Shown here in pieces: positions 32,807 to 57,400 of a stretch of 64,000 nt of DNA. Made by a program: the position numbers and the translations under genes. The notes beneath the pieces are model-generated. The model did not search any database. It worked only from the letters and a program-made list of their open reading frames with translations, and was not told where the DNA came from. The stretch's first letter is position 1. Each line of letters begins with the position of its first letter. Source of the stretch: Schmidtea polychroa (taxonomy: Eukaryota); the NCBI GenBank assembly GCA_044892525.1, contig CM097885.1:22940001-23004000 (forward strand). The letters run 5' to 3'.

Positions 32807-35800
32807 ATGTCACAAAAAAATAAAATACATCCTATTGAAACGGAAGAGGAATTAGAAACAAGAATCATTTCACCTAATTCAATGATAATGCAAGTTTTTG
32901 ATAGCAGTTCGTCCGTTAAAAAGGAAGAAAAAGAAGAACATAAAAAAATGAATTATGATTCAAATCGACAGTTAGAAAAGATATTGAAATCAATAGAAAA
33001 CTGGGACCTCAAAGAATTTCTATCTATTTATGAATTAGAAATATTATCTGTCAACAGTGTTTTTGATTGCAAATTAAAGGAAACGGTAAATATTTATTAA
33101 AATATTTTCAAATATTAATACTACTGTCATTCATAAGTTGAAGCTGTCTTCGAATTTCCCTGGCTACCTTGACAATTGCAACTTGATTCACTATGCCACC
33201 TTGTACAGAGCAACTAAAATTGTAAGGTTGCTTCTAAGTTCACAATTTAACTACCCCATTGATACAGTGACCCAGGTAAGTCTTATTTTCTCTAAAGAAA
33301 TTGTGATAAATGCTTTTATTTAAAGGGTATTTATTTTCATTTGTGTTTTTTAAAATAAATTTATAACAGAAAATGTTTTCTACCTAACTAATTATATTAA
33401 AATAGTGTACATCATCCCTTCCGTTCCTTTTCCAAGTTTCTTCAACTCTCCTTGCAATAATTATTAACAAAATATTCTGGAGATTTGAAAGCAGAAACAA
33501 TCCTAACTCCAGTCAACTATATTTCGTTTGCTTTCGTTTTTTTTCTAAAATGGTTTTGAAAAGAATTTCAATATATCTCAGTTAAAACTGATGTATTTGC
33601 ATATTGTCATCCATACATCTTTTTCACAATATATATCGATAGCATCACCATCGTTGTCAGGTTACATACATATACAATATTGATAATTTATAAACTAATT
33701 ATTAAATCTCTAAGTTTTAAATTATAAATACTAATTTTAAATAATTATTTTCAAAAAGATAATCAAAAATAATTTTTAAAACATTAATTTAAAATTATTA
33801 AATTTTAAATAAATATTTTAAAACACTCTTTTTTATTTTTAAAAATTCTTTAAAAAAATAAACATCAACATACAAAACTTAATTAAAAACATTCAACACA
33901 CACGTATTCACTGCATTCTGCACATTGATTTTCGGATTAAAAGTTCTTATCAATAATGCTTCACATATCACATGCTCAAAACAATTATCAAAATTTTTTG
34001 ATAAGATTTTAAAATCAGACATTCCTAATTTTCTCGTACAACCTTTATTATGATCCTTAATATTGGTCACTCTTTCGGTCGACAAGGTTTTTGCACTCGA
34101 ATAATATATTTTTTGCATTAATTTATAGCTATATTTTCTATCTTTTAGTGTAATATTTTTTTGTCTGACTTTATTACATGGTTTATTAATTTTATTTTAT
34201 TGTTAATTATAAGTGTATCTACTAATTGCCAATTCTGAACATGATTGACCGTATTAATAATTTACATGCAGTGGCCCTCTTTTCAACAAAAAAGAACCAA
34301 TATTAAATACAATTGTCATATTTTACAAATTATTTTTTTATCTTTATTTCGATTTCGACTATTGTTCAATACTTTTCATTTATTCATATTTAAACACAAA
34401 TTTCCGACACTGCCTTTCTGAAGTGTCAGATATAATACAATATTATTTCAAATGTTATTCATTATAGCAACGGTTTGCAACACCGGTAACCAAGTTAATA
34501 GACGAAACTTCAATAAAAAACTTCGATAGTTCATCCGAAAATACCGATAATTTTGTAGTTCTGTTTTGAAAAAGGCACAAATACAATTAAATACCAAAAA
34601 ATGAATGTAGAATGAATGTCGTTGATCTTTTTGATGAGGAATTTTTGCACATCCTTTATCAAATAGAAACTTGTCAATATCATGTACCTTATATATTTCT
34701 TTGATTTATTGTCATACAAATATTAATATGAAAATTATTGAATTATAAAAAAATCAAAGGTGAAATAAAAAGATAAATATGATAATTACAATAAAATTAT
34801 ACTCCCTCTGTCCAAAAATGATAGTCCAGTTTGACTTTAAATCGTAATTTCTTTTATACTTAACAGTGATACTTAAAATGCAGTTTTGTTATTTGTTCAA
34901 TCAATAAAATAAAATTATTTAATGTGTTTTTATTGTAAAAGGTTTTACAAAACCGTTCAATTTTTTATATTCTCTATTGACAATCATTTTTTGAAAAAGG
35001 CTAAAATGAAAATAGACTATCATTTTTGGACAGAGGGAGTATATCATATCATACAGAATTTAATACCGAGTCTGATGAAATAGAAAGTAATTTGAAAACT
35101 AGTTTTAAATGCATGTTAAAAGGAAAATATTGGAAATAAATAATTTTTTTGAATGTGTTGTTGTCATATTGTAGAAAATCTGATAACAATTCGAATTAAA
35201 TATAAATACTTTGAAAAATATTGAAAAACTTGAAGTGCTAAAAGTTTTAAAATAAAAAATAAATACTTTTTAATAAATATTATATAATAACTTGTAGAAA
35301 ATTTTATGGCGAGTCTAATGTTGCTAAACATGATAGTAGGTAGATAGTAGCGTACGGCAGCAATAGGGGGGGTACCCCCCCCCTGCTGCCGTAATTTTTT
35401 TGCTGCAACTTTTGATTACGCAATTTTTCAGACTATAGTGAGGGGGTCTCGATGGTCCTGGGATTTTCAATACAAAAAAAATTTTCAATACAAAAACGAT
35501 GGTCCTGGGATTTTCAATACAAAAAAAATTTTTCAATACAAAAATCCGACTACCACTAAAAAATCATGGAATTTTCACACTATAGTGAGGTGAGTCTCCT
35601 TGGACCTGAGAAATAGGTGGTCTACACTAAAAAAAACGTGGTAATTTAAGGTCTCAGGATATTTTCTATACAAAAAGGCGGTCTCACTAAAAAAGCATGG
35701 TAATTTAAGGTCTCAGGATATTTTCAATACAAATAGGTGGTCTACACTAAAAAAAGCCAAGGATTTTTCACACTATAGTGAGGTGGGTCTCCTTGGACCT

Positions 35801-38800
35801 GAGAAATAGGTGGTCTACACTAAAAAAAACGTGGTAATTTAAGGTCTCAGAATATTTTCTATACAAAAAGGCGGTCTCACTAAAAAAGCATGGTAATTTA
35901 AGGTCTCAGGATATTTTCAATACAAATAGGTGGTCTACACTAAAAAAAGCCAAGGATTTTTCACACTATAGTGAGGTGGGTCTCCTTGGACCTGAGAAAA
36001 AGGTGTTCTACACTAAAAACGTGGTAAATTTTTCAATTAAAGTAAATAATGGCTCAAATTTTTGAATTACAGTAAATTATGGTCCAAAAAATTAAATTAA
36101 AGTAAATTATGGTCCTAAAAATTGAATTAAAGTAAATTATGGTTCTAAAAAATTAAATTACAGTAAATTATGGCTCAAATTTTTGAATTACAGTAAATTA
36201 TGGGTCTAAAAACTGAATTACAGTAAATAATGGTTCTAAAAATTAAATTAAAAGTAAATTATGGTTCTAAATTTTTCAAATACAGTAAATTATGGTTCTA
36301 AAAAAATTAAATTACAGTAAATTAAGGTCCAAATTTTTCAAATACAGTAAATTATGGTCCAAAAATTTAAATTAAAGTAAATTATGGCCAAAGTTTTTGA
36401 ATTACAGTAAATTAAGGTTCTAAATTTTAAATTAAAGTAAATTAAGGTTCTAAAAAATTAAAATAAAGTAAATTAAGGTCCAAATTTTAAATTAAGTAAT
36501 CAATGGTAATAATTTTTAAATAAGTAAATTAAAGTAAATTAAAGTAATAATTTTTAAATAAGTAAATTAAAGTAAGATTTTAAAATTTATTTACAAAAAG
36601 TTGAAGGTGTTTGAGAATTGAAATTTTTTAATGAAAATTTTTATGAAATAATTTTTTAAGTAAATTTTAATAGAAATTTTAATGAAATATTTTTCAATGG
36701 TAATTTTTAATGGAAATTTTTATGGAATATTTTTCAAAGACAAATTTTAATAATAATTCAACAACAAACCAACAACTTAGTACCAACAACCAGTAACTTA
36801 CGAACATGTATTAACAACCAGATACCTACAACTAGTTACTAACAACCAGTTACCTGATACCAATTACCTACCAAGTACTTACAACCAACATCAACCAGAT
36901 ACCTACAACTAGTTACTAACAACCAATTACCTGCTACCAAGTACTTACAACTAGATACCACGTACTAAATAACTCTCAAACAACCAAGTACCTACAACAA
37001 ATTACCAGATACCAAGTACCTACAACTAGTTACTAACAACTAGTTACCTGATACTAAGTACCTACAACCACCTAACAAGTACTAACAACCAAAAACAAGC
37101 AACCAACCAGGTACCAGATACCACCTACTAAGTACCTACAACCTACAACTAGATACTAACAACCAGTTACCTAATACCAAATACTTACAACTAGTTACCA
37201 AGTACCTACAACCACCTACCCATTAACTAGCTACCAAGTACTAACAACTAGGTCTCAAACAACTAAATACTAACAACCAGTTACTAACTACTAAGCATTA
37301 ATTACCTACAACTAGTTACTAACAACTAGATACCAAGTACTTACAACCAACATCAACCAGGTACTAAGCATCATCAACTAACTACTAAGTACCTACAACC
37401 TACAACTAGATACTAACAACCAGTTACCTGATACCAAATACTTACAACTAGTTACCAAGTACCTACAACCACCTACCCATTAACTAGCTACCAAGTACTA
37501 ACAACTAGGTCTCAAACAACTAAATACTAACAACCAGTTACCAACTACTAAGCATTAATTACCTACAACTAGTTACTAACAACTAGATACCAAGTACTAA
37601 CAACCAACATCAACCAGGTACTAAGCATCATCAACTAACTACTAAGTACCTACAACCTACAACTAGATACTAACAACCAGTTACCTGATACCAAATACTT
37701 ACAACTAGTTACCAAGTACCTACAACCACCTACCCATTAACTAGCTACCAAGTACTAACAACTAGGTCTCAAACAACTAAATACTAACAACCAGTTACCA
37801 ACTACTAAGCATTAATTACCTACAACTAGTTACTAACAACTAGATACCAAGTACTTACAACCAACATCAACCAGGTACTAAGCATCATCAACTAACTACT
37901 AAGTACCTACAACCTACAACTAGTTACTAACAACCAGTTACCTGATACCAAATACTTACAACTAGTTACTAACAACCAACCAACTAGGTACTAGATACCA
38001 AGTACTTACAACCAACATCAACCAGGTACTAAGCATCATCAACTAACTACTAAGTACCTACAACCTACAACTAGATACTAACAACCAGTTACCTGATACC
38101 AAATACTTACAACTAGATACCAAGTACTATCAACCAAAAACAACCAACCAACTAGGTACTAGATACCAAGCACTCACAACCAACATCAACCAGGTACTAA
38201 GCATTATCAACCAACTAAATACTAAGTACTAACAACCAACCAACCAGTTACCTGATACCAAGTACTTACAACTAGTTACTAACAACCAGATACCTACAAC
38301 TAGTTACTAACAACCAGTTACCTGCTACTAAGTACATACAACCAACTAGCTACCACCTACCAAGTACCAACAACCACCTACCCATTAACTAGCTACTAAG
38401 TACTAACAACTAACTACCACCTACCAAGTACATACAACCAACATCAACCAGGTACTAAGTATTATCAACCAAGTACTAACAACGAAGTAACTTACCTAGT
38501 ACTAAGCACTGTCAACTAGATACCAAACACTTACAACCAGATTACCACATGAAATTATTGGTTAAATATGAAAATAAGGGTTATAATTAGTTGTTTAGTA
38601 AATTATGGTGTAAAATTAAGTAATAAAGGATAAATAGGCAAATTAAGGATAAGTAAATTAAAGTTAAAAATTTTAAATAAGTAAATTAAGGTTCAAAATT
38701 TTAAATTAAAGGAAACAATGGTTTAAATTTTAAATTAAAGCTAAATGAGTAAATTAAAGTAATAATTTTTAAATAAGTAATGTAATAAGTAAATTAAACT

Positions 38801-38920
38801 AAGATTTTTAAATTTATTAACAAAAAATAGAAGGTGTTTGAGAATTGAAATTTTTTAATGAAAATTTTTATGAAATATTTTTTAAGTTAATTTTTAATGG
38901 AAATTTTAATGGAATAATAA

Positions 38921-38963
<43 letters not shown>

Positions 38964-41900
38964 TCAACAGTTACCAACAATCGGTTACTAAATATTTTTA
39001 ACTAGGTGCTAACAAATACTTACAACATGATACCACGTACTAACTAACTCTCAAACAACCAGATACTTACAACTAACTACTAAATATTCTTCACTGTATT
39101 TTATGAAATGCTTTTAAATTAATTTTTTATCTATCTACAAAAATATATTTAATTACAATCATTAGAAAAACCTTTTCAAATTTAACAAAAATGTTGATTT
39201 TCATCAAAAAACCACAACTCATCACCACGTGGAATTCAAAATAATTACAATGAAAGACTAATGAATTCTAATTTACAAAACATTCTTCTTTTAAATGATA
39301 ACTACTGACTTATTATTGCAATGTAAAAATCGCATTCAATAAATACTTATTGTTGATCAGTTTTATTATATATACTCTGACTTTATCCGACAGGATGTTT
39401 TGACCCCCTAAGGGTACAGGTCGTAAGGGTACTAGTCGTAAGGGTATTGGTAACACTCAACCACAACCTACCCATTAACTAGTTACTAAGTACTATCAAC
39501 AAGCTATCAACCAGATACCAACTACTAACAACCACCATCAAAACCCATCGAGAAATTAACAAATATCAACCTACAACTATATAACAACAATCAATAAACA
39601 ACACTGTACCAACTACCAAATACAAGATACCAACAACTTAGTACCAACAATCAACTAACAACACATAAAAATAATAGCAATTAAATACAAAATACTCTTC
39701 ATCACATACACTATCTTCTTATCAAAATCTAAAAAGTCAACCAACTACTTACAACCAACAACTATGTACTGACAAATTGATCTTTAAAAGAAAATACTCT
39801 TCACTTGAAAAATTAGATGGAAAATTAATTGAACTCAAGGCATCAATAACTAGGTAAAAATTGATTAAATAATTGTAAAAATTTAAATTATTCGAAATAA
39901 ATATCATAAAAAATTAATTAATGGACAAGAAAGAATTCTAATCATTAATCATCCAGTAAATTAAAAAAAATACTGATCATTCAAGTTGAATCAACTAAGA
40001 TAATAAATTAATAAGATAAGATCTAGTAGATAATTGATTTAGATTGAATAAATTAATTGAAATAAAATTAATTTTAATTATTTTTTTAAATGTACTCAAA
40101 ATGATTGACTGATTGCTCAAAATATTCAAAAAAAAACAGTATGAATTCATTACCATTATCAAAGTCAGCAATCTACAATAATAATATATATCATTAAATT
40201 CCAAAAGAGACTAGATAACTAATGATAACAAACCAGTAAATTCATTTAAATGACAATAATTGGTATATCCTAGTGAATTCTCCAATAAAATCATCTAAAA
40301 AGCATCAAATTTCCCTGAAATAACTATATCTTTTAAGATTAGTATCTTATCGATAAGTACTTGTTAAAGATCATATATTCACCTCAAACTAACAAGATTC
40401 CTTAAAATCCCTTAAATGACTATATTTCTACCCTTAATTCATATTATTACAAATATCATCTAAAAAGCATCAAATTTCCCTGAAATAACTCTATCTTTAA
40501 AGATTAGTATTTTATCAATAAATATCCTTAAAAGGTTATATATTTACCTCACACTAATAAGATTGCTTAAACTCTCCTTTAAATGACTATAATTCTAACT
40601 TTAAATCCTATTATCATACATATTTCACTATTGATAAAACCAGTTATAATTAAATTTTTGTTAATCACTGTAAATTTTTGTAAATCACTGTACTTGAAAT
40701 TTAAAATAAATATAACTGACTAGGTCCCATTGAAAGATTAAATTTATCCATTCAATAAAATATATTTCTTCAAATGATCATTTTTACCAATATTCAACCG
40801 ATTTAATTACTAATTAAAATCAAGATTTCCTCCAATAAAGATCAATTTTATTTAGTCAATGTTTTAAGTCCATATTTCTCAACTTTTGTCGTTGTCCGTC
40901 TAAATAAAGACAAAAATAATTCAAAGTTGATATCAATCCCATTTATCTGTAAAGTTTTCATCGTCAAAACCAAGTAAATCGATCATTATCCTTACTTAAT
41001 AGAACATTGTTCTAAAATATAAATCTAAATTAATATACAATGAATTAATCACAACCTAATAAAACGATATAATTATTATTGATACATAACTGACTAATTG
41101 ACATTTCCCTTAAAACAATGATATTTTACCAACATCACCATTAAAAAAATCATATATTCCCATCTTAACCCATGTCTCATTAAATTTAACCGACTATATT
41201 CCCATCTTAACCCATCCTTCATTAAATTCAATCGACTATATCTCCCTTACAATGATATATTCCCACCTTATCTGATCTCTCATTAAATCTAACCGACTAT
41301 ATCCCTTTAAAAATCATATATTCCCACCTTATCCGATCTCTCATTAAATCTCACCGACAATATCCCATCTTATCCGATCTCTCAGCAAATATTTCTACCC
41401 TTTTAAACATCTATCCGATTATATCCCTTATTTTCCCTAAAGATTTCACCCACTTGAGCCCTTTAATATATATCAATCCTCTTAAAATCCTCAGAGAACT
41501 TCAAAAATATGACTTTTAATTAATTGCTATAGGAACCAGACAAATAATAAGAGCCCCCTAAAAGATCAAAATTCACTAAATTTTCTACAAATATATACCA
41601 TCAAATACTGGAGATGATATATATTGATTGATCATAATTCTTCATCGATTCAGCCAATCATTTTCAAGCGCTATCAGCAAACTAAATTTCAGTATATTCT
41701 ACAATCATTTTCAAGTAAATTTAAATTCCTTGTTAAAGTTAACTAGTTTCTTAGCTCATGTTTTTTAAAGTTCATCAATGTGTAAATATTCTTAGAAAAT
41801 TATTGAAAAAATTATTTAGTGAAATATATTACAAACTTATCATTAAAAATTTATTCTATCACTTGAAATTAATTTTTATTTAAAAACTATTCAATAAAAT

Positions 41901-44900
41901 ACCACTAATTATCAAGAAATTAATTAAATTTATCAATTAAATTTATCACCATTAAAACTTTTAATCAGTCAACATGAAATTCTTAGAAAATTGTTCAATA
42001 TCCTCATAAAAATTTATCCTATCACTTGATTATTGTACAAACTCTAATTATTAACCTCATTAAAAATAAATTTTTATTTAAAATTATCAAGAAATTAATG
42101 AAATTTATCTTAGAATTATCATTAAATTATTAAAAATTCACGAAAATGATAGATATCCACAAAAATAATAGAAAATTACAAAAATGATGGAAATTCACAA
42201 TAATGATAGAAAATTACAAAAATAATAGAAAATTACAAAAATAATGGAAATTCACAAAAACGATAAAAATTCACAAAAATGATAGAAATTTACTTGAATA
42301 TTTACTAAAACCATCAACTCTAAAAATTATCAATGAATGCCTTAAACAACAAATTTGCCTAAATAATCATTCAAATAAAAGCATTAAATGATCAGTACCC
42401 TTGTGATATGTTGAATGTGAGTAGTACCCTTGTGAGCAATACCCATAGGGGGACAGAATATTTTGTCGGATAAACTCAGAGTATATATTAATTAACTCAT
42501 TCTTCATTGAATCAGTAAAATTATCATAAATTTCGATAAAAATTCTAAAGTGGTAAGCAATGAAAAGAGAAATATTCTTTAAACTTTGATAAAATTAACA
42601 ATGAAGGTGGTAAGAATCTTCATTAAAATGAGGAAATTACTCGATGATAAATTCAAATGGGTGAAAATAATTGGTAGAATAATTCATTAATAGATCATTG
42701 AATGGGCATAGATAAGAAGAAGCTTGATAAGAATGGAAGTATATTAATTTATTTAAAATTATTTCATAAAATTCATAAATTTAATAAAAAAAAAACTTTT
42801 AAAACAAATATTTGTCTGGAATAATTAATCAAAATTGGTGGAATATAATTGATTAAATATCGAGGGTGGGGAATATAAGTGAATAATTAATGGAAAATCG
42901 GGAATCGGGGGTAATATAGGGATTAAATAGTAGAGAATAATAGTGAATATAAGTGAGGAGGATATATAATTTAAGCTAGTTTATTACATAACAAGCCGTG
43001 ACTAGTTTATTACATAACAAGCCGCAACTAATTTATTACATAACAAGCTGTGAATGGTTTTTGAATAAGAAATATGGAATAGGTCTTATTTTTTTAAATT
43101 TTTGACTAAAATAAATTCTAAAATAATAACTAATTAACACTAAAATGTTTTAATTTANNNNNNNNNNNNNNNNNNNNNNNNNNNNNNNNNNNNNNNNNNN
43201 NNNNNNNNNNNNNNNNNNNNNNNNNNNNNNNNNNNNNNNNNNNNNNNNNNNNNNNNNNNNNNNNNNNNNNNNNNNNNNNNNNNNNNNNNNNNNNNNNNNN
43301 NNNNNNNNNNNNNNNNNNNNNNNNNNNNNNNNTAAGTTGAATATTCAAATATATATCTTAGAAAATACAATCAAAATTAAATTTTAAAAATATAAATTTT
43401 ATAAGTTTTTCAAATTCTCGAATAATGTAAATAATAATTTAATTTTTACCGGGTATAGACTTAAACTTATTGACGGAATTATGTAATAGAAATAAAAAGT
43501 TACTTAGGTTATTTTTTTTTCAAAATTATGACTAAGTCCTTTAATATTGTAATAATAGCTATTTATTAATAAATTTATTATTTTACGTTAAATATTTCAA
43601 AAACAATTATCATATTATTATATTACCCTTTTTAATCAAAATAAGATAACTATTCAAATAGATGATTTTTATAAATTACAATAAAAATTAAATACTTTTA
43701 CACTAAATTTAAAAATATAAATTTTATAAGTAAATGTAAATAAGAAATTAGTGTATTATCAGTTATATACTTTTTAAACTTATTGATTAGATATTAAAAG
43801 TTACTCTTTTTTTCATAAGGTCTTTTAATATTGTATTCTATTTATTATTAAATTTACTATTTTACACTAAAATATTTAGAAAACAATCATCATAATATTA
43901 AATATGAAACTTCAATCAAAATTAGCTAATACTCGAATATATATCTTATAAAATACAATCAAAATTAAATACTTCACAAATTTTAAGTAAAGTTTTTTAA
44001 ATTCTCAAATAAATGTTAACAAGATATTAATTTAATAATCATTATATACTTTTTAAACTTATTATTGGAATAAAACAATAGAATGATATTGAAAATATAT
44101 ACAATTTTAAAATATAATTAAAATTAAATTACATACTTTAAAAATTTAGTAAAATGTTGGTAAAATACCATTCACAGCTTGTTATGTAATAAATTAGTTA
44201 CGGCTTGTTATGTAATAAACTAGTCACGGCTTGTTATGTAATAAACTAGCTTAAATTATATATCCTCCTCACTTATATTCACTATTATTCTCTACTATTT
44301 AATCCCTATATTACCCCCGATTCCCGATTTTCCATTAATTATTCACTTATATTCCCCACCCTCGATATTTAATCAATTATATTCCACCAATTTTGATTAA
44401 TTATTCCTCACAAATATTTGTTTTTTTATTAAATTTATGAATTTTATGAAATAATTTTAAATAAATTAATATACTTCCATTCTTATCAAGCTTCTTCTTA
44501 TCTATGCCCATTCAATGATCCATTAATGAATTATTCTACCAATTATTTTCACCCATTTGAATTTATCATCGAGTAATTTCCTCATTTTAATGAAGATTCT
44601 TACCACCTTCATTGTTAATTTTATCAAAGTTTAAAGAATATTTCTCTTTTCATTGCTTACCACTTTAGAATTTTTATCGAAATTTATGATAATTTTACTG
44701 ATTCAATGAAGAATGAGTTAATTAATATATACTCTGAGTTTATCCGACAAAATATTCTGTCCCCCTATGGGTATTGCTCACAAGGGTACTACTCACATTC
44801 AACATGTCGCAAGGGTACTTTTAATACTTTTATTTGAATGGTTATTTAGGCAAATTTGTTGTTTAAGGTATTGATAATTTTTAGAGTTGATGGTTTTATT

Positions 44901-47900
44901 CAAGTAAATTTCTATCATTTTTATGAATTTTTATCGTTTTTTTGTGAATTTCCATCAATTTTTGTAATTTTCTATCATTTTTGTGCTTTTCTATCTATTT
45001 TGTGGATTTCCATCATTTTCATGAATTTCCATAATTTTTTGTGAATATCAATAATTTTTGTGGATTTCTATCATTTTTGTGAATTTTTATCGTTTCTTGG
45101 TGAATTTCTATTATTTTTGTAGATTTCTAACATTTTTGCAAATTTCATGTTTATTGGATGAATATTTAATAATTTAAAGTTAGTTCTAAGATAAATTTAA
45201 TTAATTTCTTGATAATTGGATGTATTTTTAATTTTAAATAAAAATTATTTTTAATGAGGTAAATAATTAGAGTTTGTACAATACTCAAGTGGTAGGATAA
45301 ATTTTTATGAGGATATTGAATAATTTTCTAAGAATTTCATGTTGACTGATAAATTTAATTAATTTCTTGATAATTAGTTGTATTTTATTGAATAGTTTTT
45401 AAATAAAAATTAATTTCATTGACAATTAGGTTAATAATTAAGTGATTTTTGATGATAACTTTGTAATGTATTTGACTAAATAATTTTTCAATAATTTTCT
45501 AAGAATATTTACACATTGATGCACTTTAAAAAACATAAGCTAAGAAACCAACTTTATCAATGACTTTAAATTTACTTGATAGTTATTGTAGGATATACAG
45601 AAATTTAGTTTGCTGTTATTGCTTGAAAATGATTGGTTGAATCGATGAAGAATTATGATCAATCAATATATATCATCTCCAGTATTTGATGGTAAATATT
45701 TGTAGAAAATATTGATTTTTGATCTTTTAGTGAACTCTTACTACATAGCTACTAAATTATTTCAATGGAAGAATATTTGGTGTCTATAACAATTAAGTCA
45801 TATTTTTGAAGTTCTTTAAAGATTTTAAGACTGAATTGAATTAAAGGAGGATTCAAGTGGGTAGAATTGAAGGATATATTCGGTTAGATGTTTAAAGAGG
45901 TAGAAATATTTGCTGAGAGATCGATTAAGATGGGATATTGTCGGTGAGATTTAATGAGGGATCGGATAAGGTGGGAATATATGATTTTTAAAGGGATATA
46001 GTCGGTTAGATTTAATGAGAGATCAGATAAGGTGGGAATATATCATTGTAAGGGAGATATAGTCGATTGAATTTAATGAAGGATGGGTTAAGATGGGAAT
46101 ATAGTCGGTTAAATTTAATGAGACATGGGTTAAGATGGGAATATATGATTTTTTTAATGGTGATGTTGGTAAAATATCATTGTTTTAAGGGAAATGTCAA
46201 TTAGTCAGTTATGTATCAATAATAATTATATCGTTTTATTAGGTTGTGATTAATTCATTGTATATTAATTTAGATTTATATTTTAGAACAATGTTCTATT
46301 AAGTAAGGATAATGATCGATTTACTTGGTTTTGACGATGAAAACTTTACAGATAAATAAGATTGATATCAACTTTGAATTATTTTTATCTTTATTTAGAC
46401 GGAGAATGACAAAAGTTGAGAAATATGGACTTAAAACATTGACTAAATAAAATTGATCTTTATTGGAGGAAATCTTGATTTTAATTAGTAATTAAATCGG
46501 TTGAATATTGGTAAAAATGATCATTTGAAGAAATATATTTTATTGAATGGATAAATTTAATCTTTCAATGGGACCTAGTCAGTTATATTGTAGTAATATT
46601 TATTTAAAATATCGAGTACAGTGATTAACAAAAAATTAATTATAACCAGTTTTATCATTAGATTTTATAAATTATTTAGGGTTAATGATTTTACATGTTT
46701 TATAGGGAAATATTTGTGATAATACGAATTAAAGTTAGATTTATAGTCATTTAAAGGGGATTTTAAGGAATCTTATTAGTCTGAGGGGAATATATGATCC
46801 TTTACGGGTACTTATCATTAAAATATCAATCTTAAAAGATAGAGTTATTTCAATGAAATTTGATGCTTTTTAGATGATTTTAGTGAAATATTTGTAATAA
46901 TATGAATTAAGGGTAGAAATATAGTCATTTAAGGGATTTTAAGGAATCTTGTTAGTTTGAGGTGAATATATGATCTTTAACAAGTACTTATCGATAAGAT
47001 ACTAATCTTAAAAGATATAGATATTTCAGGGAAATTTGATGTTTTTTAGATGATTTTATTAGAGAATTCACTTGGATATACCAATTATTGTCATTTAAAT
47101 GAATTTACTGGTTTGTTAGATGTTATCATTAGTTATCTAGTCTCTTTTGTAATTTAATGATAATTATTTTTATTGTAGATTGCTGACTTTGATAATTGTA
47201 ATGAATTTATACTGATTTTTTGAATATATTGAGAAATCAGTCAATCAATTTGAGTACATGTATTACTTTTACAAAAATAATTAAAATTAATTTTATTTAA
47301 ATTAATTTATTCAATCTAAATCAATTATCTACTAGATCTTATCTTATTAATTTATTATCTTAGTTGATTCAACTTGAATGATCAATATTTTTTTTATTTA
47401 CTGGATGACTAGAATTTTTTCCTGTCCATTAATTAAATTTTTATGATATTTATTTTGAATATTTTAAATTTTTACAATTATTTAATCAATTTTTACCAAG
47501 TTATTGATGCCTTGAGTTCAAATAATTTTTCATCCAATTTTTCAAGTGAAGAGTATTTGCTTTTAAAGATCAATTTGTCAGTACATAGTTGTTGGTTGTA
47601 AGTAGTTTGTTGACCTTTTAGATTTTGATAAGAAGATAGTGTATGCGATGAAGAATATTTTGTATTTAATTGCTATTATTTTTATGTGATGTTAGTTGAT
47701 TGTTGGTACTAAGTTGTTGGTATCTTGTATTTGGTAGTTGGTACAGTGTTGTTTACTGATTGTTGTTATATAGTTGTAGGTTGATATTTGTTAATTTCTC
47801 GATGGGTTTTGATGGTGGTTGTTAGTAGTTGGTATCTGGTTGATAGCTTGTTGATAGTACTTAGTAGCTAGTTAATGGGTAGGTTGTGGTTAAGTGTTAC

Positions 47901-48418
47901 CAATACCCCTACGACTAGTACCTTTACGACCAGTACCCTTACGACCAGTACCCTTACGACCTGTACCCTTAGGGGGTCAAAACATCCTGTCGGATAAACT
48001 CAGAGTATATATAATAAAACTGATCAACAATAAGTATTTATTGAATGCGATTTTTACTTTGCAATAATAAGTCAGTAGTTATCATTTAAAAGAAGAATGT
48101 TTTGTAAATTAGAATTCATTAGTCTTTCATTGTAATTATTTTGAATTCCACGTGGTGATGAGTTGTGGTTTTTTGATGAAAATCAACATTTTTGTTAAAT
48201 TTGAAAAGGTTTTTCTAATGATTGTAATTAAATATATTTTTGAAGATAGATAAAAAATTAATTTAAAAAGCATTTCATAAAATACAGTGAAGAATATTTA
48301 GTAGTTAGTTGTAAGTATCTGGTTGTTTGAGAGTTAGTTAGTACGTGGTATCTAGTTGTAAGTATTTGTTAGCACCTAGTTAAAAAATAATCAGTAACCG
48401 ATTATTGGTAACTGTTGA

Positions 48419-48457
<39 letters not shown>

Positions 48458-51400
48458 TCATTAAAATTTTCATTAAAAATTACATTTCTCAAAAAAGTTG
48501 GTGGTTATTCAATCTTTTGATAATAAAATTAAAAATCTTACTTTAATTTACTCATTTAGCTTTAATTTAAAATTTGAACCATTGGATACTTAATTTTAAA
48601 TTTTGAACCTTAATTTACTTATTTAAAATTTTTAACTTTAATTTACCTAATTATTCTTTATTTCTTAATTTTACACCATAATTTACTTAACAACTAAATA
48701 TAATCCTTATTTTCATATTTAACCTATAATTTCATGTGGTCATCTGGTTGTAAGTGTTTGGTATCTAGTTGACAGTGCTTAGTACTTGGTATCTAGTTGT
48801 TAGTAGTTGGTTGACAGTGCTTAGTACTAGGTAAGTTACTTGGTTGTTAGTACTTGGTTGTTAGTTGGTTGTAGGTACTTAGTAGTTGGTTAATAATGCT
48901 TAGTACTTGGTAGGTGGTTGTTTTTGGTTGTAGGTACTTAGTAGTTGATTAATAATGCTTAGTACTTGGTAGGTGGTTGTTAGTTGGTTGTAGGTACTTA
49001 GTAGGTACTCTAGTTGGTTGATAATGCTTAGTACCTGGTTGATGTTGGTTGATAGTACTTGGTATCTAGTTGTAAGTATTTGGTATCAGGTAACTGGTTG
49101 TTAGTATCTAGTTGTAGGTTGTAGGTACTTAGTAGTTAGTTGATGATGCTTAGTACCTGGTTGATGTTGGTTGTTAGTACTTGGTATCTAGTACCTAGTT
49201 GGTTGGTTGTTAGTAACTAGTTGTAAGTACTTGGTAGCAGGTAACTAGTTGTTAGTAACTAGTTGTAGGTTGTAGGTACTTGGTAGCAGGTAACTGGTTG
49301 TTAGTAACTAGTTGTTTGAGAGTTAGTTAGTACGTGGTATCTACTTGTAAGTGTTTGGTATCTAGTTGACAGTGCTTAGTACTTGGTATCTTGTTGTAAG
49401 TACTTGGTAGCAGGTAACTGGTTGTTAGTAACTAGTTGTAAGTACTTGGTAGCAGGTAACTGGTTGTTAGTAACTAGTTGTAAGTACTAGGTAGCAGGTA
49501 ACTGATTGTTAGTAACTAGTTGTAAGTACTTGGTATCTGGTAACATATTGTTAGTATCTAGTTGTAGGTACTTGGTATCAGGTAACTGGTTGTTAGTAAC
49601 TAGTTGTAGGTATCTGGTTGTTAATACATGTTCGTAAGTTACTGGTTGTTGGTACTAAGTTGTTGGTTTGTTGTTGAATTATTATTAAAATTTGTCTTTG
49701 AAAAATATTTCATAAAAATTTCCACTAAAAATTACCATTGAAAAATAATTCATAAAAATTTCCATTAAAAATTACCATTGAAAAATATTTCATAAAAATT
49801 TCTATTAAAAATTATTTAAAAATTATTTCATAAAAATTTCCATTAAAAAATTTCAATTCTCAAACACCTTCAACTTTTTGTAAATAAATTTTTAAAATCT
49901 TACTTTAATTTACTTATTTAAAATTTTTTACCATTGATTACTTAATTTAAAAATTATTACTTTAATTTACTTATTTAAAATTTTTTACCATTGATTACTT
50001 AATTTTAAAATTTAGACCTTAATTTACTTTATTTTAATTTTTTAGAACCTTAATTTACTTTAATTTAATTTTTAGAACCATTATTTACTTTAATTTAAAA
50101 ATTTGGACCTTAATTAACTTTAATTTGAAAAATTTGAGCCATTATTTACTTTAATTGAAAAATCTGAGCCCATTAATTACTTTAATTCGAAAATATGAAC
50201 CTTAATTTAATTTTTTAGGACCATAATTAACTTTAATTTAATTTTTTAGGACCATTATTTACTTTAATTTAAAATTTTGAACCTTAATTTAGTTATTTGA
50301 GCCCATTCATTACTTTAATTGAAAAATCTAAGCCCATAATTTACTTTAATTCAAAAATTTGGACCATAATTTACTTTAATTTAATTTTTAGACCATAATT
50401 TACTGTAATTTAATTTTTTTTTAGACCATAATTTACTGTAATATAATTTTTTAGAACCATAATTTACTGTAATTTAATTTTTTAGGACCATAATTACCTT
50501 ATTTGAAAAATTTGAACCATAATTTACTTTAATTGATAAATTTGGACCATAATTTACTGTAATTTAAAAATTTACCACGTTTTTTAGTGTAGACCACCTT
50601 TTTCTCAGGACCAAGGAGACCCACTTAATTTAATTCGAAAAATCCATGCTTTTTTATTGATAGTCGGATTTTTGTATTGAAAATATCCTGAGACCTTAAA
50701 TTACCATGCTTTTTTAGTGTAGACCAGCTTTTTATATTGAAAAATTTTTTTTTGTATTGAAAATCCCAGGACCAAGGAGACCCACCTGAATTGACCTAGA
50801 AAAATCCATGCTTTTATAGTGGTAGTCGGATTTTTGTATTGAAAATCCCAGGACCATCGAGACCCCCGCACTATAGTCTGAAAATTCTATGCTTTTTTAG
50901 TGGTAGTCGGATTTTTGTATTGAAAATCCCAGGACCATCGAGACCCCCTCACTATAGTCTGAAAAATTGCGTAATCAAAAGTTGCAGCAAAAAAATTACG
51001 GCAGCAGAACCCCCCTCCAGTCATCAAACAACAGAAAATTTTGAACCAGCATTAGTTTGTTTTCATTGCTTCAAATGTTTTGATTTATATATATTTTTCA
51101 TATTTAAAAGATCAAAAATTCAAAAATATTGATGTTAAAAATAAATTTTTCTCTATAATCATCAAATAATTATAAAATCGGGAAAATTACAAAAACATAT
51201 CTGTTTTAACTTATCAACATTTCAAATTTGAATAATTTTGTATGATTGCATGAAATTGATAGGCTGCCATCTAAAGGTATAATTTATTTTTCAGCAATGA
51301 TCAAAATGGCCGGAGTATCAAACAATATATTGCTCAATAAGATCCTAAATGATTGTAACATTAACACTCGAATAAATAAAAAAAATCATTTACATTATTT

Positions 51401-54400
51401 CTATTTAGAGTTTCAAACAAATTTTCGTCATTAATTAACTTAATAGATTCAATAATAATCTTTATCACACGCAAGGTATTGGATTTCATGACATGAGCAT
51501 CTTTTCGAACATGTACTGAATCCTAAGTATCCAACCAGCTATCGTAGTCAGTCATCATTGCCAAAGATGCATAACATAAGTCTAATTCTTTGACAAGAGT
51601 CACTTCAGAAACTGTAGTCACATTGATAACAGAAGCTACCATTTGATTCCAAAACTTTGACTAAAATTTCAAAGAAAACTAGAAAATTAGATTTTAATTT
51701 TGTGTACCTTTTTAAAAATTTTTCTTTCGGAAATTTTGGGACTTTTTGAGTTTGGAAAATTTGGGAAATTTATTTTTGGGACATTTTGAATTTTGGGAAA
51801 ATTTTGAGTTGGGGAAATTTGTAAAAAATAATTTTGGGAAATTTTTGATTTTGGAAAATTTGGGGGAAATAAATTTGGGAAATTTTTGAGTTGGGAGAAT
51901 TTGGGGAAAATAATTTTGGGACTTTTTAAATTTGGGAAATTTTTGAGTTGGGCAAATTTGTAAAAAATAATTTTGGGACTTTTTAAATTTTGGGAAATTT
52001 TTGATTTGGGAAAATTTGAGGGAAATAAATTTGGGAAATTTTTGAGTTAGGAAAATTTGGGAAAAATAATTTTGGGAAATTTTTGAGTTGGGAAAATTTG
52101 GGGAAAATAAATTTGGGAAATTTATTTTGGGGATTTTGTGATTTGGAAATATTTTGTAAATATTCCTTGTGATTTTTTTTCCTAGTAATTTGTTGATTTT
52201 TTCCAAGTATTTTTATATAAAAATTTTCAAATTTATCCAGGCATTTTTATTTTTCAAAATTTTTTCTAAGTCAAGTGGTGTGGCCTTCACTTTAAAGTAC
52301 ATTATCAAAAATTATTCTATGTCAAGTGGTGTGACTTTCATTTTAAAGTACTTTCATATTTTTTAAAATATTTTTCCAAGTATTTTATTAAAGCTTTTGT
52401 TCATTGTCCCACCATATGTTGAAGAATATGATTTTATTTCTATAATATAAGATTTTCTATGTTTGATAATATATGAATGGTGTTAAATTATGGCATTTGA
52501 TGTTGAAGTTTGAGACTTTGGAGCTCATTTTCCATGGAAACTATGCATTTTTTCTATATATAGACTATATAATTTTATGTTTGTTATAAAATTCCGAGTT
52601 TAAAAAAAAATTTCTCCAGGGGGGGTAGTGGTCTGGATGGGACACTACCATCTACTATTACTAAATGTAAACACAGTTTGCTAAGCACCTTTGCAAAACT
52701 TTGCACTGATAATTCTATATTAATACATACAATCATTATTAGACCTTGTTGAACATTAAGAGAAAGTAATTTTACTTGAAAAACATTAATAAACATGCAT
52801 TTACATAGAAATATTGGTTTTGCATTAAATTATCAAGGGTAAGATTTTGAGTAACAAATGTAAAGCAGAAATATTATACATTATTAAGATATTTTTCTTT
52901 CTGGATTTGACAAATTTCCGATGGAGATACAAAACGTCCTGATCATTGAGTAGAATACATTAACAAAATTCTAAAATCCACAGCAATAAACAAAAGCAGT
53001 ATCCTATTAGGGGGGGGGTCGATAACTCATAGTGATTTGGAAACGCTCACAAGTTTTTCGAGGAATTTCTAAAGTAGTTTGAACTGTCTGAATGAGATAA
53101 GAAAAAGCCGTGGTTAACCGATCTTTATATTCTTGTAAAATAAAACTTTGAAAAATCTTAAAGCAACGGCTTAAACAAACATACATATATAGTATACCTT
53201 CCATGATAACTTGTAGTGAATTAAATATTTAACATAACTTTTCAAAAGTAATTTTACCCATTATCTCCATGCCATACGGAAAGGTTATAGTCAATAAATA
53301 TATAGATTTTGACAATCTCTATACTTCCACAAACGAAATGTTTCAAAGATCTCAAATAGTCTCTAACTCAAAATATACAATATTTTGCTATATTTGACCA
53401 TCTTTCAATAGAAATATAAAAATCTAGTTGTCAGCAAAAAGGTAGGTCTCATAAACCTCTATATTTTTTGAAAATTAATTTTTCAAAAATCTCAAAGAAA
53501 AAAAAAGAAAAAAATTTTAATCCTGGAAAAATTGAAATTTCCGGTCAAATGAATTTAAAATCTTTTAAAATGCGCAATGTTATAACAAATTTTATAATTC
53601 AGACTATAAAATTTCATTGAAGGGGTTTGATAATGGGAAGGAAGTTAGAAAGCTCACATCTAGCTACTGTCAACTGTAAAGTGAAACATTTCTTCCATTT
53701 TGATGAATTTAGAGCTACCAATTTAAATATAGTGTAACCAACCTTCAGTATTCGATATTTATTCAAACGATTTAATATTTAGTTTGTTTGCACATTCCAT
53801 TGGTGTTAATTTCATAAAAATAATCAAAGAAATCTTAGTTTGGCATCAGAAAAATGAAGTATCTCTAGATTAAAGTTTTTGTAAGCACATTTTGCACATT
53901 TGAATCAAAGTCTCAACCTGATATTATTTCAATTTCAAGACCTTCATTACTCATAATTTGAAGATGAGTTATCTTTTGACGATGAAAAGTATTTATTTGA
54001 TACTTGAAATGATATTAAATTAAAATAAATAAAATTAACCCATTTTCACTTTATTATATTTTGCTAGCAGCACTACTTTGACAGATTTAATATATATTTA
54101 TGAGATTAAATGTCAATTAGAAAGTGTACTCTAACGCGTCTGCATTAATTTTATTTCATTTTATTAATATTTGAATATCTTAATAACTAATTTGATCCTA
54201 AACGGCCGTGAGTCACCTGTGACTCGACAACAATATATACAATAAACAAAGATAGCGTCCGGTGTGATAAACCTTTAATAATTCAAAAATTCAAATATAC
54301 AAATATATTTTTCAATTAAAAAAAAACTCCAGTCAAACATTCTTTTCACGATATATTTCGACAGTTTTCTTGTCATCATCAGGTGGGATATAATAACTAT

Positions 54401-57400
54401 GTGAATTAAGGATTTTAAACAAATTTATTAATTTACATAGTTATTATATCCCACCTGATGATGACAGGAAATCGAAATATATCGTGAAAAAATGTTTGAT
54501 TGACGTTATCTTATAATTAAATCATTGCCGTGTTTGTTTAATTATTAATTTAAAAAGAGTTGCTTTATTTTCACTGTTATAAAAGTTGATAAAATTCAAT
54601 AAAATTAATTTTAATAATTTTGAAAATAGACAATTACTACACAACCTTTCTTTGGCTTTCAACTTGTTTGGGAAACAAGATTTTATCATCATTGCAAAAC
54701 TATTCTCCATTTTCAAATGTGATTTATTTAAGTCATTTAAAACTTTTCTCTCCTCTAACTTTATTGAAATTTATGAAATATTCCACTTCTTCCAGGGTTC
54801 AATCTATTTTTCGGTAATCACTATAAACCTGCATTTTCTATTTTTCTTCTTCAAATAAAGCATTGTATACTGCAATTATGAGATTATTTTAAGAATTCCA
54901 CAACACAAAAAAGGACGGGGAAAGCTATTCTCATTTCTTTATAACACAATTTAATATTTTTAATAGAAAATTTTACCAAATTTTCCTTACAAAACAGGAA
55001 GGAATAACGCCACTTCACATTTCTGCAGCCATTGGAGATTTCTATACTGCTCGAGAACTTCTAGCGCACGGAGCAAACAAAAATTTGCTGGATAAAGTAA
55101 TTTTTGTTTAATTTAAAATATTTATTACTTTATCATCATTTGATACGTTTCCCAAGTTTCTCACGTCATCAGTCCAGAGACTTTTGCAACCATTTTTACA
55201 TATCTGGGGTTCCAAGCATTTCTGATTCAACACAAGATTGAATCACAAGAACCGCAAATAATTTTTCATCTGTAAAGACAACAAATCTCAGTTCGTATTC
55301 GTATCAAGTCGTTCTTTGTACATTCTATTTAGTTGTCCTAGGTTTATATTTCAAATAAAATTTCCAATTTACTTCAATAAAAGATGAACAAATCTAAGTT
55401 GAGGTATTTTAAGATCCATAGCTCGACATTTTTTGTTATTTCGTATAGAAAATTAGTTTCCTCCATCCTAAGACAACTGAAATTGGCCGGGAAAATGAAG
55501 TATTTCCTATCAAGCAGTTGAGTATTATAAAATTTGAAGCCCTTTTTCTAAGAATTATAAGGCCCCTTAAAATTGCTTTCACATTATCATTTACAAATAA
55601 GCTTGCCAACTCTCCCGTTTTTGTTGAGAGTCTCCCGGAATCGGCTTTCGTCTCCCGTCTCCTAGTTAAATATGACCCGGGAGATGTAAATCTCCGTATT
55701 TCCGTTTTTACAATATTTTACAATTTTCCTAGAAAAAGTACAGTTTTTCAAGTTTTAATTTTTATTTGATTTCTCTAAAATCACCAAAGCTATTGGAGTC
55801 AGCCAGACGACAAGAAAAATACAATTTTAAAAACAAACAAAAATAGCAAGATTTGTAAACTGTACTATGTAATATGTAAAAATAATTGTTTTGTTTAAAT
55901 CTTTATGGTATTAGTCATCATATAGTTAAAATCACTAACATGTGTAAACCAAAAAAGTGAAAGAACACCTGTTATATTATTTCTTAAGCGTTATACTGTT
56001 CACAATTTTATAATCTCCCGGGTTCAAGGTTGTGGGAGTTGGCAACCTTATTTACAAAAATAAAAATCATTCAATTTATAAAACAAAAATTATATTTATG
56101 AAAATAAAAGAATATAACATTGTATTTATTAAATAACTTGACTATTAATCGGTAAATATATCGATGTGTTTTTATATCTTTACTGATTCATAGTCAAGCT
56201 TTTAATAAATACAATGTCAATTGAAAAGAAATCAGTGCTGAAAATTGATAAAAGTTCTTATAATAAAAGAATATAAATTTAATTAAAAATTAATTAAAAA
56301 AAATTTAATTCAATAAAAAATTATGAAAAAAAGTAAAAAATATTTGAAAATTTTGATTTGATTTTTAGATTTTATATACATACGTTCAACAAGTAGCCAG
56401 AATATGTGTTAAAGGAAACGAACAAAAACGGTATATTTTAACATAAGAACAATACGGTTATAAAGGGTTTATTTTTCAATCCCATTTTCACACTTTCTCC
56501 AGCGAATCAAAAGTTTCAAAAAGCATCTTTTATTTTTATTTATTTTATTCTGCTGGTACTCCTGTGCTAAACACAGTAAGCAAAATGGATAAGATGGTTC
56601 TTTTATCAAGTATTCAAATACAAAATAAGTCCAAAATAATAAAAAAATAAAAATCAGAAGACAAAGCTTTGCTCGGTATATAAATATTTGAATACTTTGC
56701 AGTGTATACTAATTCCATATTAAAACCAAATATCTTCATAAGGTTTTTGACTATAAAGCAATGTTTTTTTCGTTTAACATAAAATTTACACAGCATTTTT
56801 CAATTCAATAACACTTGTAACAAAGGCACTGTAGAAAATTCATGTTAAATCGAAAAAAAAGTAATGATTTCAATGAAGATAAATAAAATTCTAAATGAAA
56901 AACCACAGATCAAAGCTGAACAAGAAATAAATGATTTTATTAAAATGTAATATGAAAAAAGTAAAATTGTTATAAATTTATTTATATACTTCGATTGTTG
57001 TTTTAATGGTTGTGCAAATTGTCAAATTGTTACTTATCAAATTGTATTTGAATCTTATTTGTGAAAAATTACTGACTAGTTTGGCCATTTCTGCTACTTA
57101 TGAAAATTTTTAAATTTTTTTTGCAAATTTTATTATTCAAACATCTATTTAATTATAGACAGGCAGAACAGCTTTACACTATGCAGTATGTTCTAATATT
57201 GAGACTTGCATCATTCTTACAAGTGATGGGGACTATGATCTACAACTTCAAGATGAGGTGGGGCATCGTTTTAATTGTAAATGATAAATTACAGTTTCAC
57301 GATTAGAACGAAAAGTCACCACTCCAATACGGGAAAATGGAAAACATGCCATTTATTTTCGAGTATTTAGAAACATTAGATAAAAAGGTAATATTTATAT

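Follow-up and report, generated by a model that had tools for sequence, protein, structure and literature searches.

The 64,000-nt window of Schmidtea polychroa DNA analysed here contains two multi-kilobase arms in opposite orientation at 35383-51007, and the question raised by this locus is whether the arms belong to a single transposon insertion or arose in some other way. An earlier note on the same DNA had read the segment as a giant modular foldback. This structure was confirmed by inverted-pair search, blastn, dot plot and tandem-repeat analysis with TRF. Positions 35383-43062 and 44163-51007 were found to be collinear reverse complements of 7,680 and 6,845 nt with nine modules in common (Table 1). 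Within 33000-53000, find_repeats returned 211 inverted pairs, the longest of which measured 725 nt (98% identity), 537 nt (96%) and 407 nt (99%). The self dot-plot and arm-versus-arm comparison proposed in the note, performed with 14-mers and blastn, gave a single clean anti-diagonal running from 35383/51007 to 43062/44163.

The arms account for 7,680 + 6,845 of the 15,625 nt and leave a non-inverted middle of 1,100 nt, estimated assembly gap included. As in a foldback element, long TIRs make up the bulk of the structure round a short middle, the size of which rests on the gap estimate, and the TIRs are built of tandem repeats with arm-specific copy number as detected by TRF. We consider that these arms probably stem from a single insertion, in the ~21.7-kb intron of an ankyrin gene, of a non-autonomous class II (TIR) transposon of foldback type that is at least 15.6 kb long. 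Such an element, with exceptionally long composite TIRs, is most likely an unusually large individual of a known kind. Its head-to-head layout depends on the scaffold join.

Table 1. Features of the inverted-repeat locus and its surroundings (positions within the window)
Feature	Position	Strand	Details
Host exon left of element	33138..33275	+	Donor GTAAGT after 33275, phase 0; weak ankyrin match, Ank_3 E 0.033
Left-flank partner of ~20-nt near-perfect palindrome	35353..35373	.	Axis T/A at 35373/35374
Candidate target-site duplication, left copy	35374..35382	.	A, then C run; C-run match with right flank
Left arm (long TIR)	35383..43062	+	7,680 nt; inverted-repeat search, blastn, dot plot
Left terminal and subterminal domain	35383..36025	+	27-nt terminus, 47-bp x2, 193-bp x2.4
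193-bp units	35554..36019		x2.4; left arm; TRF
30-bp array and AT block	36026..36766	+	30-bp x16.8; AT block 40-bp x3.2; TRF
C/A-rich satellite	36767..38596	+	14/28/42-bp units; TRF; GC skew -0.34 to -0.43
Second AT-rich repeat block, then unique segment	38597..39368	+	(AAT)17 at 38913-38963; blastn, TRF
Nested TIR element, left arm	39369..42487	+	Non-coding; 3,119 nt; 24-nt termini, TIRs ~70-80 nt
Inner unique segment	42488..43062	+	Ends in 26-bp x3.3 repeats; 98-99% identity to right arm
Non-inverted middle	43063..44162	.	95 nt unique, gap 43158-43332, ~290-bp tandem array from 43333
Right arm (long TIR)	44163..51007	-	6,845 nt; left-arm module order in reverse complement
Nested TIR element, right arm	44726..48011	-	3,286 nt; extra 176-bp and 19-bp repeat copies
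Right terminal and subterminal domain	50569..51007	-	27-nt terminus, 81-bp x2.7 repeats
Candidate target-site duplication, right copy	51008..51016	.	C-run match with left flank
Host exon right of element	54998..55096	+	Acceptor before 54998, phase 0; 33 codons, one ankyrin repeat, Ank E 8.3e-6
Next host exon	57159..57257	+	33 codons, one ankyrin repeat, Ank E 7e-4; phase 0 at both ends

Module composition and arm-to-arm identity

All modules listed in the earlier note were present, with one correction: the inner repeats have a period of 26 bp, not 25 bp, and occur x3.3 and x3.0 in the two arms. Copy-number differences between left and right were detected by TRF in arrays of 47/81/193, 30-31, 40, 14/28/42/257 and 26 bp; the 30/31-bp arrays, for example, reached x16.8 in the left arm and x20-22 in the right arm. 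The C/A satellite, which reads as G/T-rich on the right arm, spans 1,830 nt on the left versus 1,010 nt on the right and thereby accounts for most of the difference in arm length. Inside this satellite, a 257-bp higher-order unit repeated x3.3 at 99% identity (37125-37969) was found in the left arm only. The proposal that arm asymmetry derives from repeat copy number was borne out. Each arm also carries a copy of a nested TIR element, and the flanks of this element are the same in both arms. The presence of this 3.1-3.3-kb element in both arms suggests that copying or homogenisation of the arms took place later than the nested insertion.

Identity between the arms was unevenly distributed. In the outer tandem arrays, where copy number varies between the arms, the alignable portions are 72-85% identical, while the inner 4.2 kb of the arms are 94.5% identical and form a mosaic of identical tracts and tracts with ~11% divergence. 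The longest identical tract was 398 nt, as compared with 95 +/- 18 nt in 2,000 permutations, and counts per 200 alignment columns had a variance of 152 versus a mean of 12.5, consistent with patchy arm identity. The identical tracts could be in part an assembly effect, if reads from both arms were merged.

The assembly gap and coding capacity

The entire left arm lies on the contig to the left of the gap at 43158-43332, the length of which is estimated, and the entire right arm lies on the contig to its right. The right contig begins inside the ~290-bp tandem array (~2.8 copies), which extends up to the gap edge. No overlap between the contig ends was found across the gap, and the 95 nt to its left displayed AT-rich, low-grade likeness to the array (at best 69% over 78 nt). 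Since the ends do not overlap and the 95 nt match the array poorly, the contigs cannot demonstrate adjacency of the arms or the true length of the centre. With the centre unread, the true size of the element may exceed 15.6 kb, and the gap could hold a coding segment.

No ORF of at least 70 aa was found in the arms, and stop-to-stop ORFs of at least 45 aa were repeat-derived only. No ORF crosses the gap except as a run of X's. In the read part of the element, no protein-family match was found; no P-type (THAP) transposase was found there, nor was a MULE-type transposase, for which the gap could hide sequence. As no transposase was found, the element cannot be placed in a superfamily. The window gave no match in Rfam and tRNA scans. 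An OCRE-domain ORF matched a protein at 85% identity that is listed under a UniParc number. A hAT-like remnant considered at 31.9-32.5 kb was dropped, having no Pfam match at E <= 1.

Further copies of the element were also sought. None of the element's termini, its subterminal motif and the terminus of the nested element had a further copy in the window's other 48 kb. Scans of metagenome, prokaryote-genome and viral contig collections gave 0 exact matches to the 26/27-nt terminus, to the 25-nt subterminal repeat or to the 24-nt terminus of the nested element, and a search with the spurious ORF that crosses the right terminus against a collection of 5.8 billion proteins yielded no candidate copy. 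The absence of a second copy carries little weight, because the searched collections lack the host genome, but the foldback family proposed in the earlier note gains no support from these searches.

These findings bear on the possibility that the locus is a long-TIR transposon rather than a true foldback, with a coding or otherwise long middle missing in the gap and the 1.1-kb loop an artefact of an underestimated gap. Such a reading would fit a gap length that is an estimate only, a right contig that starts in a tandem array, which is a typical place for an assembly break, and the location of one arm on each contig. However, gap estimates of 175-227 nt recur in the scaffold, which suggests spanning read pairs and not arbitrary padding, and the longest-TIR copies of known families are non-coding (PMC3573991). 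A missing middle of this kind is considered unlikely.

Element ends, junctions and host intron

The same 27-mer was found at both ends of the element, at 35383-35409 (+) and 50981-51007 (-), and nowhere else in the window (chance expectation, 0). The two ends agree at every position over their outermost 96 nt. A subterminal 25-mer (n=5) is confined to the two ends in mirrored orientation. A 13-nt motif (as at 35464-35476) is likewise restricted to the ends and mirrored, with 8 copies on the left, all in one orientation, and 5 on the right. Beyond the termini, the inverted repeat stops sharply, and the two flanks show no relation to each other on either strand. Because of these unlike flanks, and because each of them adjoins the same element end, an allelic (haplotype) false duplication was rejected.

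Both junctions carry a C-run direct repeat that had been absent from the earlier note. It comprises 7 exact nt, or 7/9 when compared as 9-mers; as a homopolymer, it can be read as 7, 8 or 9 nt. In the 64 kb, runs of C>=6 number only 7, and two of these adjoin the element ends. Relative to the element ends as placed here, the exact 7-nt repeat is shifted by 1-2 nt. This flank repeat is target-site-duplication-like and was taken as a candidate duplication.

At the left junction, the sequence 35353..35373 reads, in reverse complement, as the direct repeat followed by the element's first 10 nt. Just 3 sites in the window carry the terminus 10-mer, namely the two ends and this stretch of left flank. 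The corresponding DNA hairpin was predicted at -20.7 kcal/mol (z -6.8), with 0/200 shuffles as good. A G-run and the 10-nt inverted terminus copy, both in the left flank, are left unexplained by the foldback model. They allow an alternative reading in which the inverted repeat reaches ~9 nt further with an 8-nt insertion.

A local inverted duplication, in which break repair or template switching turned a repeat-rich piece of the intron into a palindrome with the termini as duplication boundaries, would be compatible with the small palindrome at the left junction, with the occurrence of the nested element in both arms, with the failure to find a transposase and with the single-copy status of the sequence within the window and the searched collections, the host genome lying outside them. 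Yet nothing in the making of a duplication junction would lead it to reproduce the rare C-run found in the other flank, both arms terminate at the same nucleotide, and the outer 0.4-0.6 kb of both arms bear subterminal motif arrays like those of transposon ends. A duplication of non-transposon origin would show neither a direct repeat in the flanks nor transposon-like ends; both were found here. We regard this origin as rather improbable. Large genomic palindromes maintain their similarity through arm-to-arm gene conversion, and they resemble the present element in their multi-kilobase inverted arms, short unique spacer and mosaic of identical and diverged tracts. Unlike this element, they are not known to end in transposon-like termini that have subterminal motif arrays and a flanking direct repeat.

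The element sits in an intron of an ankyrin-repeat gene model on the + strand. No homologue of exon 1 (93 aa) was found among 1.8 billion protein representatives. With this result, and with a weak ankyrin match in the left exon, the gene model counts as plausible but falls short of proof. The exons ending at 33275 and starting at 54998 had been described as collinear and in frame. Their phase-0 donor and acceptor and their common strand were upheld, whereas being in frame by genomic coordinate has no meaning across a gap of estimated length.

These exons also bear on a scaffold misjoin, by which ends of two repeat-family copies from different loci were placed together and no 15.6-kb foldback exists. 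The arms are on separate contigs, and read-pair linking could have been led astray by inner modules that are 95-99% identical. Against this, the C-run direct repeat matches at both outer junctions, and splice-phase-compatible ankyrin exons lie in the same orientation on both sides; we judge a misjoin very unlikely. The sharp ends, unrelated flanks, C-run repeat and phase-0 ankyrin exons on both sides provide independent evidence that the two contigs hold the two ends of one insertion. Least credible of all is the head-to-head insertion of two complete elements of ~7-8 kb, along the lines of the earlier proposal of two copies of an ~8-kb element: the locus does contain two similar units in opposite orientation, but, leaving aside the 10-nt piece in its left flank, the terminus is present only at 35383 and 51007, flank repeats exist as a single pair, and neither arm is a complete TIR element, since the inner ends at 43062/44163 lack a copy of the terminus.

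Relation to known foldback elements and proposed origin

Foldback-like elements are modular in their domain plan, lack ORFs and have 8-10-bp TSDs (PMC4079207). The foldback-type plan inferred at this locus held up on comparison: flanking, tandem-repeat outer and inner domains are combined with a non-inverted middle, in the arrangement depicted for Tetris of Drosophila virilis (PMC4079207). In its read part, the element shares with Tetris the flanking, outer and inner domains, satellite-like tandem units that vary in copy number in the outer domain, a non-coding middle and a lack of ORFs. The TSDs of Tetris are 8-10 bp, compared with a homopolymeric repeat of 7 exact nt or 7/9 here, and, in a comparison by structure, its TIRs reach 1,735 bp versus 6.8-7.7 kb (PMC4079207). 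In contrast to Tetris, the present TIRs contain several unrelated arrays and a nested element.

In Galileo, a foldback-like element of the P superfamily, TIRs lengthen through tandem-repeat expansion and recruitment of inner sequence, and it is in non-autonomous copies, with ~95% TIR-TIR identity, that the longest TIRs are found (PMC3573991). As at this locus, repeat number differs between a Galileo copy's two TIRs. Galileo is defined as a family by its P-type transposase and has TIRs of up to ~1.25 kb and a 7-bp TSD (PMC3573991), whereas the element described here has no transposase in its read part and a flank repeat of 7-9 nt.

Drosophila FB and Mutator/Phantom foldbacks such as Tm1 have composite TIRs of variable-length tandem repeats, TSDs of 8-10 bp (mostly 9) and many non-coding copies, and the TIR pair of one element is ~93% identical on average (PMC3169594). 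No MULE/FLYWCH protein was found in the read part of the present element. The sole specific likeness to FB is the 30-31-bp period, a common period that is not evidence of homology, and FB-like structure is polyphyletic according to the cited foldback literature (PMC3169594).

A single foldback-type insertion, the favoured reading, would have proceeded by cut and paste, with a transposase supplied in trans that recognised both the terminus and the subterminal motif in its repeated copies and whose staggered cut spanned 7-9 nt. The arms may have grown beyond ordinary TIR length by two routes, namely amplification of internal tandem arrays and recruitment of inner sequence into the inverted repeat; the recruited part would include the unrelated 3.1-3.3-kb TIR element, which had presumably landed earlier in one arm. 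Arm-to-arm copying, by gene conversion or hairpin-templated repair, could have kept some tracts identical while others drifted to ~11% divergence, and the arrays would have changed copy number independently in each arm, as with the left-specific 257-bp unit. Because the flank repeat is imperfect and the arms have diverged, the insertion appears to be old and is probably immobile now. Transcription of the host intron would, as a likely side effect, generate a multi-kilobase imperfect hairpin RNA.

A bolder interpretation, which we hold to be doubtful, is that the element belongs to an undescribed family of giant foldbacks, with arms actively homogenised in cis, whole satellites and transposons carried as TIR cargo and a role as an intronic source of hairpin RNA (endogenous siRNA), or that the unread centre hides a transposase of unrecognised type.

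Since each arm sits on a separate contig and the sequence of the centre is missing, the size and non-coding status of the element are provisional, and giant inverted arms split in this way call for caution in annotation. If real as assembled, its ~7-kb TIRs are several times longer than those of Tetris (1.7 kb) and Galileo (1.25 kb), and this one locus shows arm growth by array amplification, capture of a nested transposon and patchy arm-to-arm copying. Foldback structures of such size seed satellites, break assemblies and promote rearrangements, and foldback arms within an intron could yield long double-stranded RNA.

Arms and their modules

The window is 72% A+T and contains four runs of N, one of which (43158-43332, 175 N) lies inside the element, a ~15.6-kb candidate foldback insertion at 35383-51007 in an intron of a plus-strand ankyrin-repeat gene. 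From 33 to 53 kb, a repeat search returned 211 inverted pairs, with a maximum length of 725 nt (98% identity). One single, clean anti-diagonal, from 35383/51007 to 43062/44163, emerged from a blastn comparison of the left part with the window, from a collinear chain of the hits and from a 14-mer dot plot. An earlier note, made from the sequence alone, had described the two arms as reverse complements, and this observation was confirmed. Its list of modules was correct, except that the inner repeats are of 26 bp and not 25 bp. Module lengths add up to the arm lengths in both arms, and the asymmetry between the arms is almost wholly due to the C/A-rich satellite.

Host exons, arms and arm modules of the element
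Feature	Position or length	Strand	Details
Host exon left of element	33138-33275	+	GTAAGT donor, phase 0; weak Pfam Ank match, E 0.033
Host exon right of element	54998-55096	+	acceptor before 54998, phase 0; 33 codons, one ankyrin repeat; Pfam Ank E 8.3e-6
Next host exon	57159-57257	+	phase 0; 33 codons, one ankyrin repeat; Pfam Ank E 7e-4
Left arm	35383-43062	+	7,680 nt
Right arm	44163-51007	-	6,845 nt
Terminal and subterminal repeats	left 643 nt, right 439 nt		left 47-bp x2, 193-bp x2.4; right 81-bp x2.7
30/31-bp array	left 593 nt, right 719 nt
AT block	left 148 nt, right 186 nt		40-bp units
C/A-rich satellite	left 1,830 nt, right 1,010 nt		257-bp unit x3.3 at 99%, left arm alone
Second AT-rich block	left 316 nt, right 196 nt
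(AAT)n	left 51 nt, right 39 nt
Unique segment	left 405 nt, right 407 nt
Nested TIR element	left 3,119 nt, right 3,286 nt
Inner segment	left 575 nt, right 563 nt		26-bp x3 repeats at its end

Exact copies of a subterminal 25-mer were found at both ends, two on the left and three on the right. The outermost 545 nt on the left hold eight copies of a 13-nt motif (as at 35464-35476), and the outermost 340 nt on the right hold five; the motif is absent elsewhere in the window and is mirrored in orientation between the ends without exception. This arrangement is that of putative subterminal transposase-binding repeats, a layout known from foldback-like and other TIR elements (PMC3573991). The arms contain no ORF of at least 70 aa, and all 52 stop-to-stop frames of at least 45 aa within them are translations of repeats; Rfam and tRNA scans gave no matches.

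Ends, flanks and host exons

At both ends the inverted repeat breaks off at the same nucleotide, and the flanks beyond are unrelated on either strand. The terminus, the 27-mer at the outer ends, occurs exactly twice in the window, at 35383-35409 (+) and 50981-51007 (-), with a chance expectation of none, and the outermost 96 nt are identical between the two ends. Because the same element end adjoins both unrelated flanks, false duplication of two haplotypes was excluded. At the left junction the flank ends in A and eight C (35374-35382), and at the right junction it begins with AA, six C and T (51008-51016), forming a direct repeat, the candidate target-site duplication, of 7 nt exact or of 7/9 as 9-mers. 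Runs of at least six C number only seven in 64 kb, four of them within one GC-rich array, and, taking the left run as given and 0.14 as the base frequency, six aligned C would arise by chance with a probability on the order of 1e-5.

In each host exon, the exon boundary cuts the ankyrin repeat at the same point. Of the proposal that the flanking exons are collinear and in frame, the agreement in splice phase (donor at 33275, acceptor at 54998) stood, but a genomic frame across a gap of estimated length is meaningless. Collectively, the shared sharp ends, the C-run and the host exons are three independent lines of evidence that the two contigs carry the two ends of one insertion. For a putative first exon of this plausible gene model (32807-33085, +, 93 aa), a search of 1.8 billion representative proteins detected no homologue; the sequence would be either an N-terminus specific to the lineage or no genuine exon at all. 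Elsewhere in the window, an OCRE-domain gene lies at 26008-27534 (+; Pfam OCRE, E 3e-13), and the protein nearest to its product in a 5.8-billion protein collection (85% identical) bears a UniParc number only.

Just outside the left flank repeat, a 21-nt stretch (35353-35373) almost perfectly reverse-complements that repeat together with the element's first 10 nt. The resulting ~20-nt near-perfect palindrome spans 35353-35393 and folds into a hairpin of -20.7 kcal/mol (z -6.8); its axis coincides exactly with the flank repeat's outer edge when the repeat is read as 9 nt. The window has only three occurrences of the terminal 10-mer. Hairpin-type repair at the left junction may have left the palindrome as a scar, or it may be a remnant of another end, and an alternative alignment, with the inverted repeat ~9 nt further out and an 8-nt insertion, is also allowed. 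About 700 nt right of the element, a tandem array of 41/57/156-197-bp units (51712-52133) has no relation to the repeats of the element and yields a spurious 164-aa ORF.

Centre, nested element and arm divergence

The gap interrupts the non-inverted centre (43063-44162), with the left arm wholly on the left contig and the right arm wholly on the right contig. A ~290-bp tandem array fills 43333 to ~44130, and the right contig starts inside it; similarity between this array and the last 95 nt before the gap is 69% over 78 nt, the noise level for AT-rich sequence. Since no overlap between the contig ends was found at the gap and nothing coding crosses it (the only 'ORFs' there are X-runs), neither continuity nor the true length of the centre can be established from sequence. 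The inverted repeat is independent of the gap; the adjacency of the two arms depends on it. The sequence read from the element, its centre being unread, has no coding capacity. Two other gaps, just 65 nt apart at 16192-16689, are another assembly break at a simple repeat, the 65 nt between them matching an AAT microsatellite also present at 29.9 kb and in both arms.

A separate, non-coding TIR element of 3.1-3.3 kb is nested in both arms, with 24-nt termini at 39369/42487 and 44726/48011, TIRs of ~70-80 nt, and internal repeats of 19, 42, 61 and 176 bp. No further copy was found in the window or in viral contigs, and its own target duplication is ambiguous in an AT-rich context. Because its flanks are the same sequence in both arms, it was probably inserted once, and the segment carrying it would then have been copied into the other arm.

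The arms differ by 222 substitutions and 30 indel events over the inner 4.2 kb (94.5% identity). Their longest run of identity, 398 nt, compares with 95 ± 18 in 2,000 permutations, none of which reached 398. Differences per 200 columns are strongly clumped (variance 152, mean 12.5), and ~1 kb (roughly 41340-42300) is ~11% diverged, between stretches below 1.5%. We read this pattern as suggesting arm-to-arm copying on an old duplication; rate variation among internal repeats, or the merging of reads from both arms in assembly, would be alternative sources of clumping. Against this mosaic background, the identity of the terminal 96 nt does not in itself point to selection.

The element matches the rest of the window via the AAT microsatellite only. 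Exact scans of metagenome, prokaryote-genome and viral collections found no copy and, because these collections do not include the host genome, say little on copy number; a protein search with the terminus-crossing ORF gave no match. Elsewhere in the window, a Tc1/mariner-type transposase fragment (13503-13865, -; Pfam DDE_3, E 4e-19) lies within the region covered by a Vps41 gene on the minus strand, the exons of which have matches to Pfam Vps41 families at ~10.5-21.1 kb, and a GC-rich 30-bp tandem array (23898-24470, 19.4 copies, 90% match) stands in AT-rich surroundings, its long repeat-derived ORFs matching no family.

Origin and relation to known foldback elements

The element is probably one old intronic insertion of a non-autonomous DNA transposon of the foldback type. 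Some transposase acting in trans would have mobilised it with a staggered cut of 7-9 nt, and the TIRs would have lengthened through array amplification and through recruitment of inner sequence, the nested transposon included, with partial homogenisation in cis. Any hairpin-RNA output would likewise be conjectural. The same insertion may instead conceal a longer and possibly coding centre in the gap, which we consider unlikely. Slightly less likely is a local inverted duplication without transposition, which is opposed by the transposon-like ends and the flank repeat. That ends from two loci were misjoined in the scaffold is improbable. The interpretation in the earlier note was supported in part. 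Its alternative of two complete elements fixed head-to-head is contradicted by the lack of the terminus at the inner ends and is very improbable.

Drosophila FB repeats have a 30-31-bp period, which the element shares, a likeness that does not speak for homology. Tetris, in which TIRs reach 1,735 bp, TSDs measure 8-10 bp and ORFs are lacking, has the same foldback domain plan as the element (PMC4079207). In Galileo, TIRs reach ~1.25 kb, grow by tandem-repeat expansion and recruitment, are longest in non-autonomous copies, and differ from arm to arm in the same manner as those of the element (PMC3573991). Tm1 and FB tie foldback structures to Mutator/Phantom transposases with 9-bp TSDs, and foldback architecture has evolved on several occasions and is no guide to classification (PMC3169594). 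The element shows three features of the structural foldback class, next to a candidate target-site duplication of 7 nt exact or 7/9 as 9-mers, and probably belongs to that class; membership in the FB/Mutator or P superfamilies would be conjectural. With its centre unread, and its size and content so far provisional, the element represents an unusually large example of a known foldback kind.
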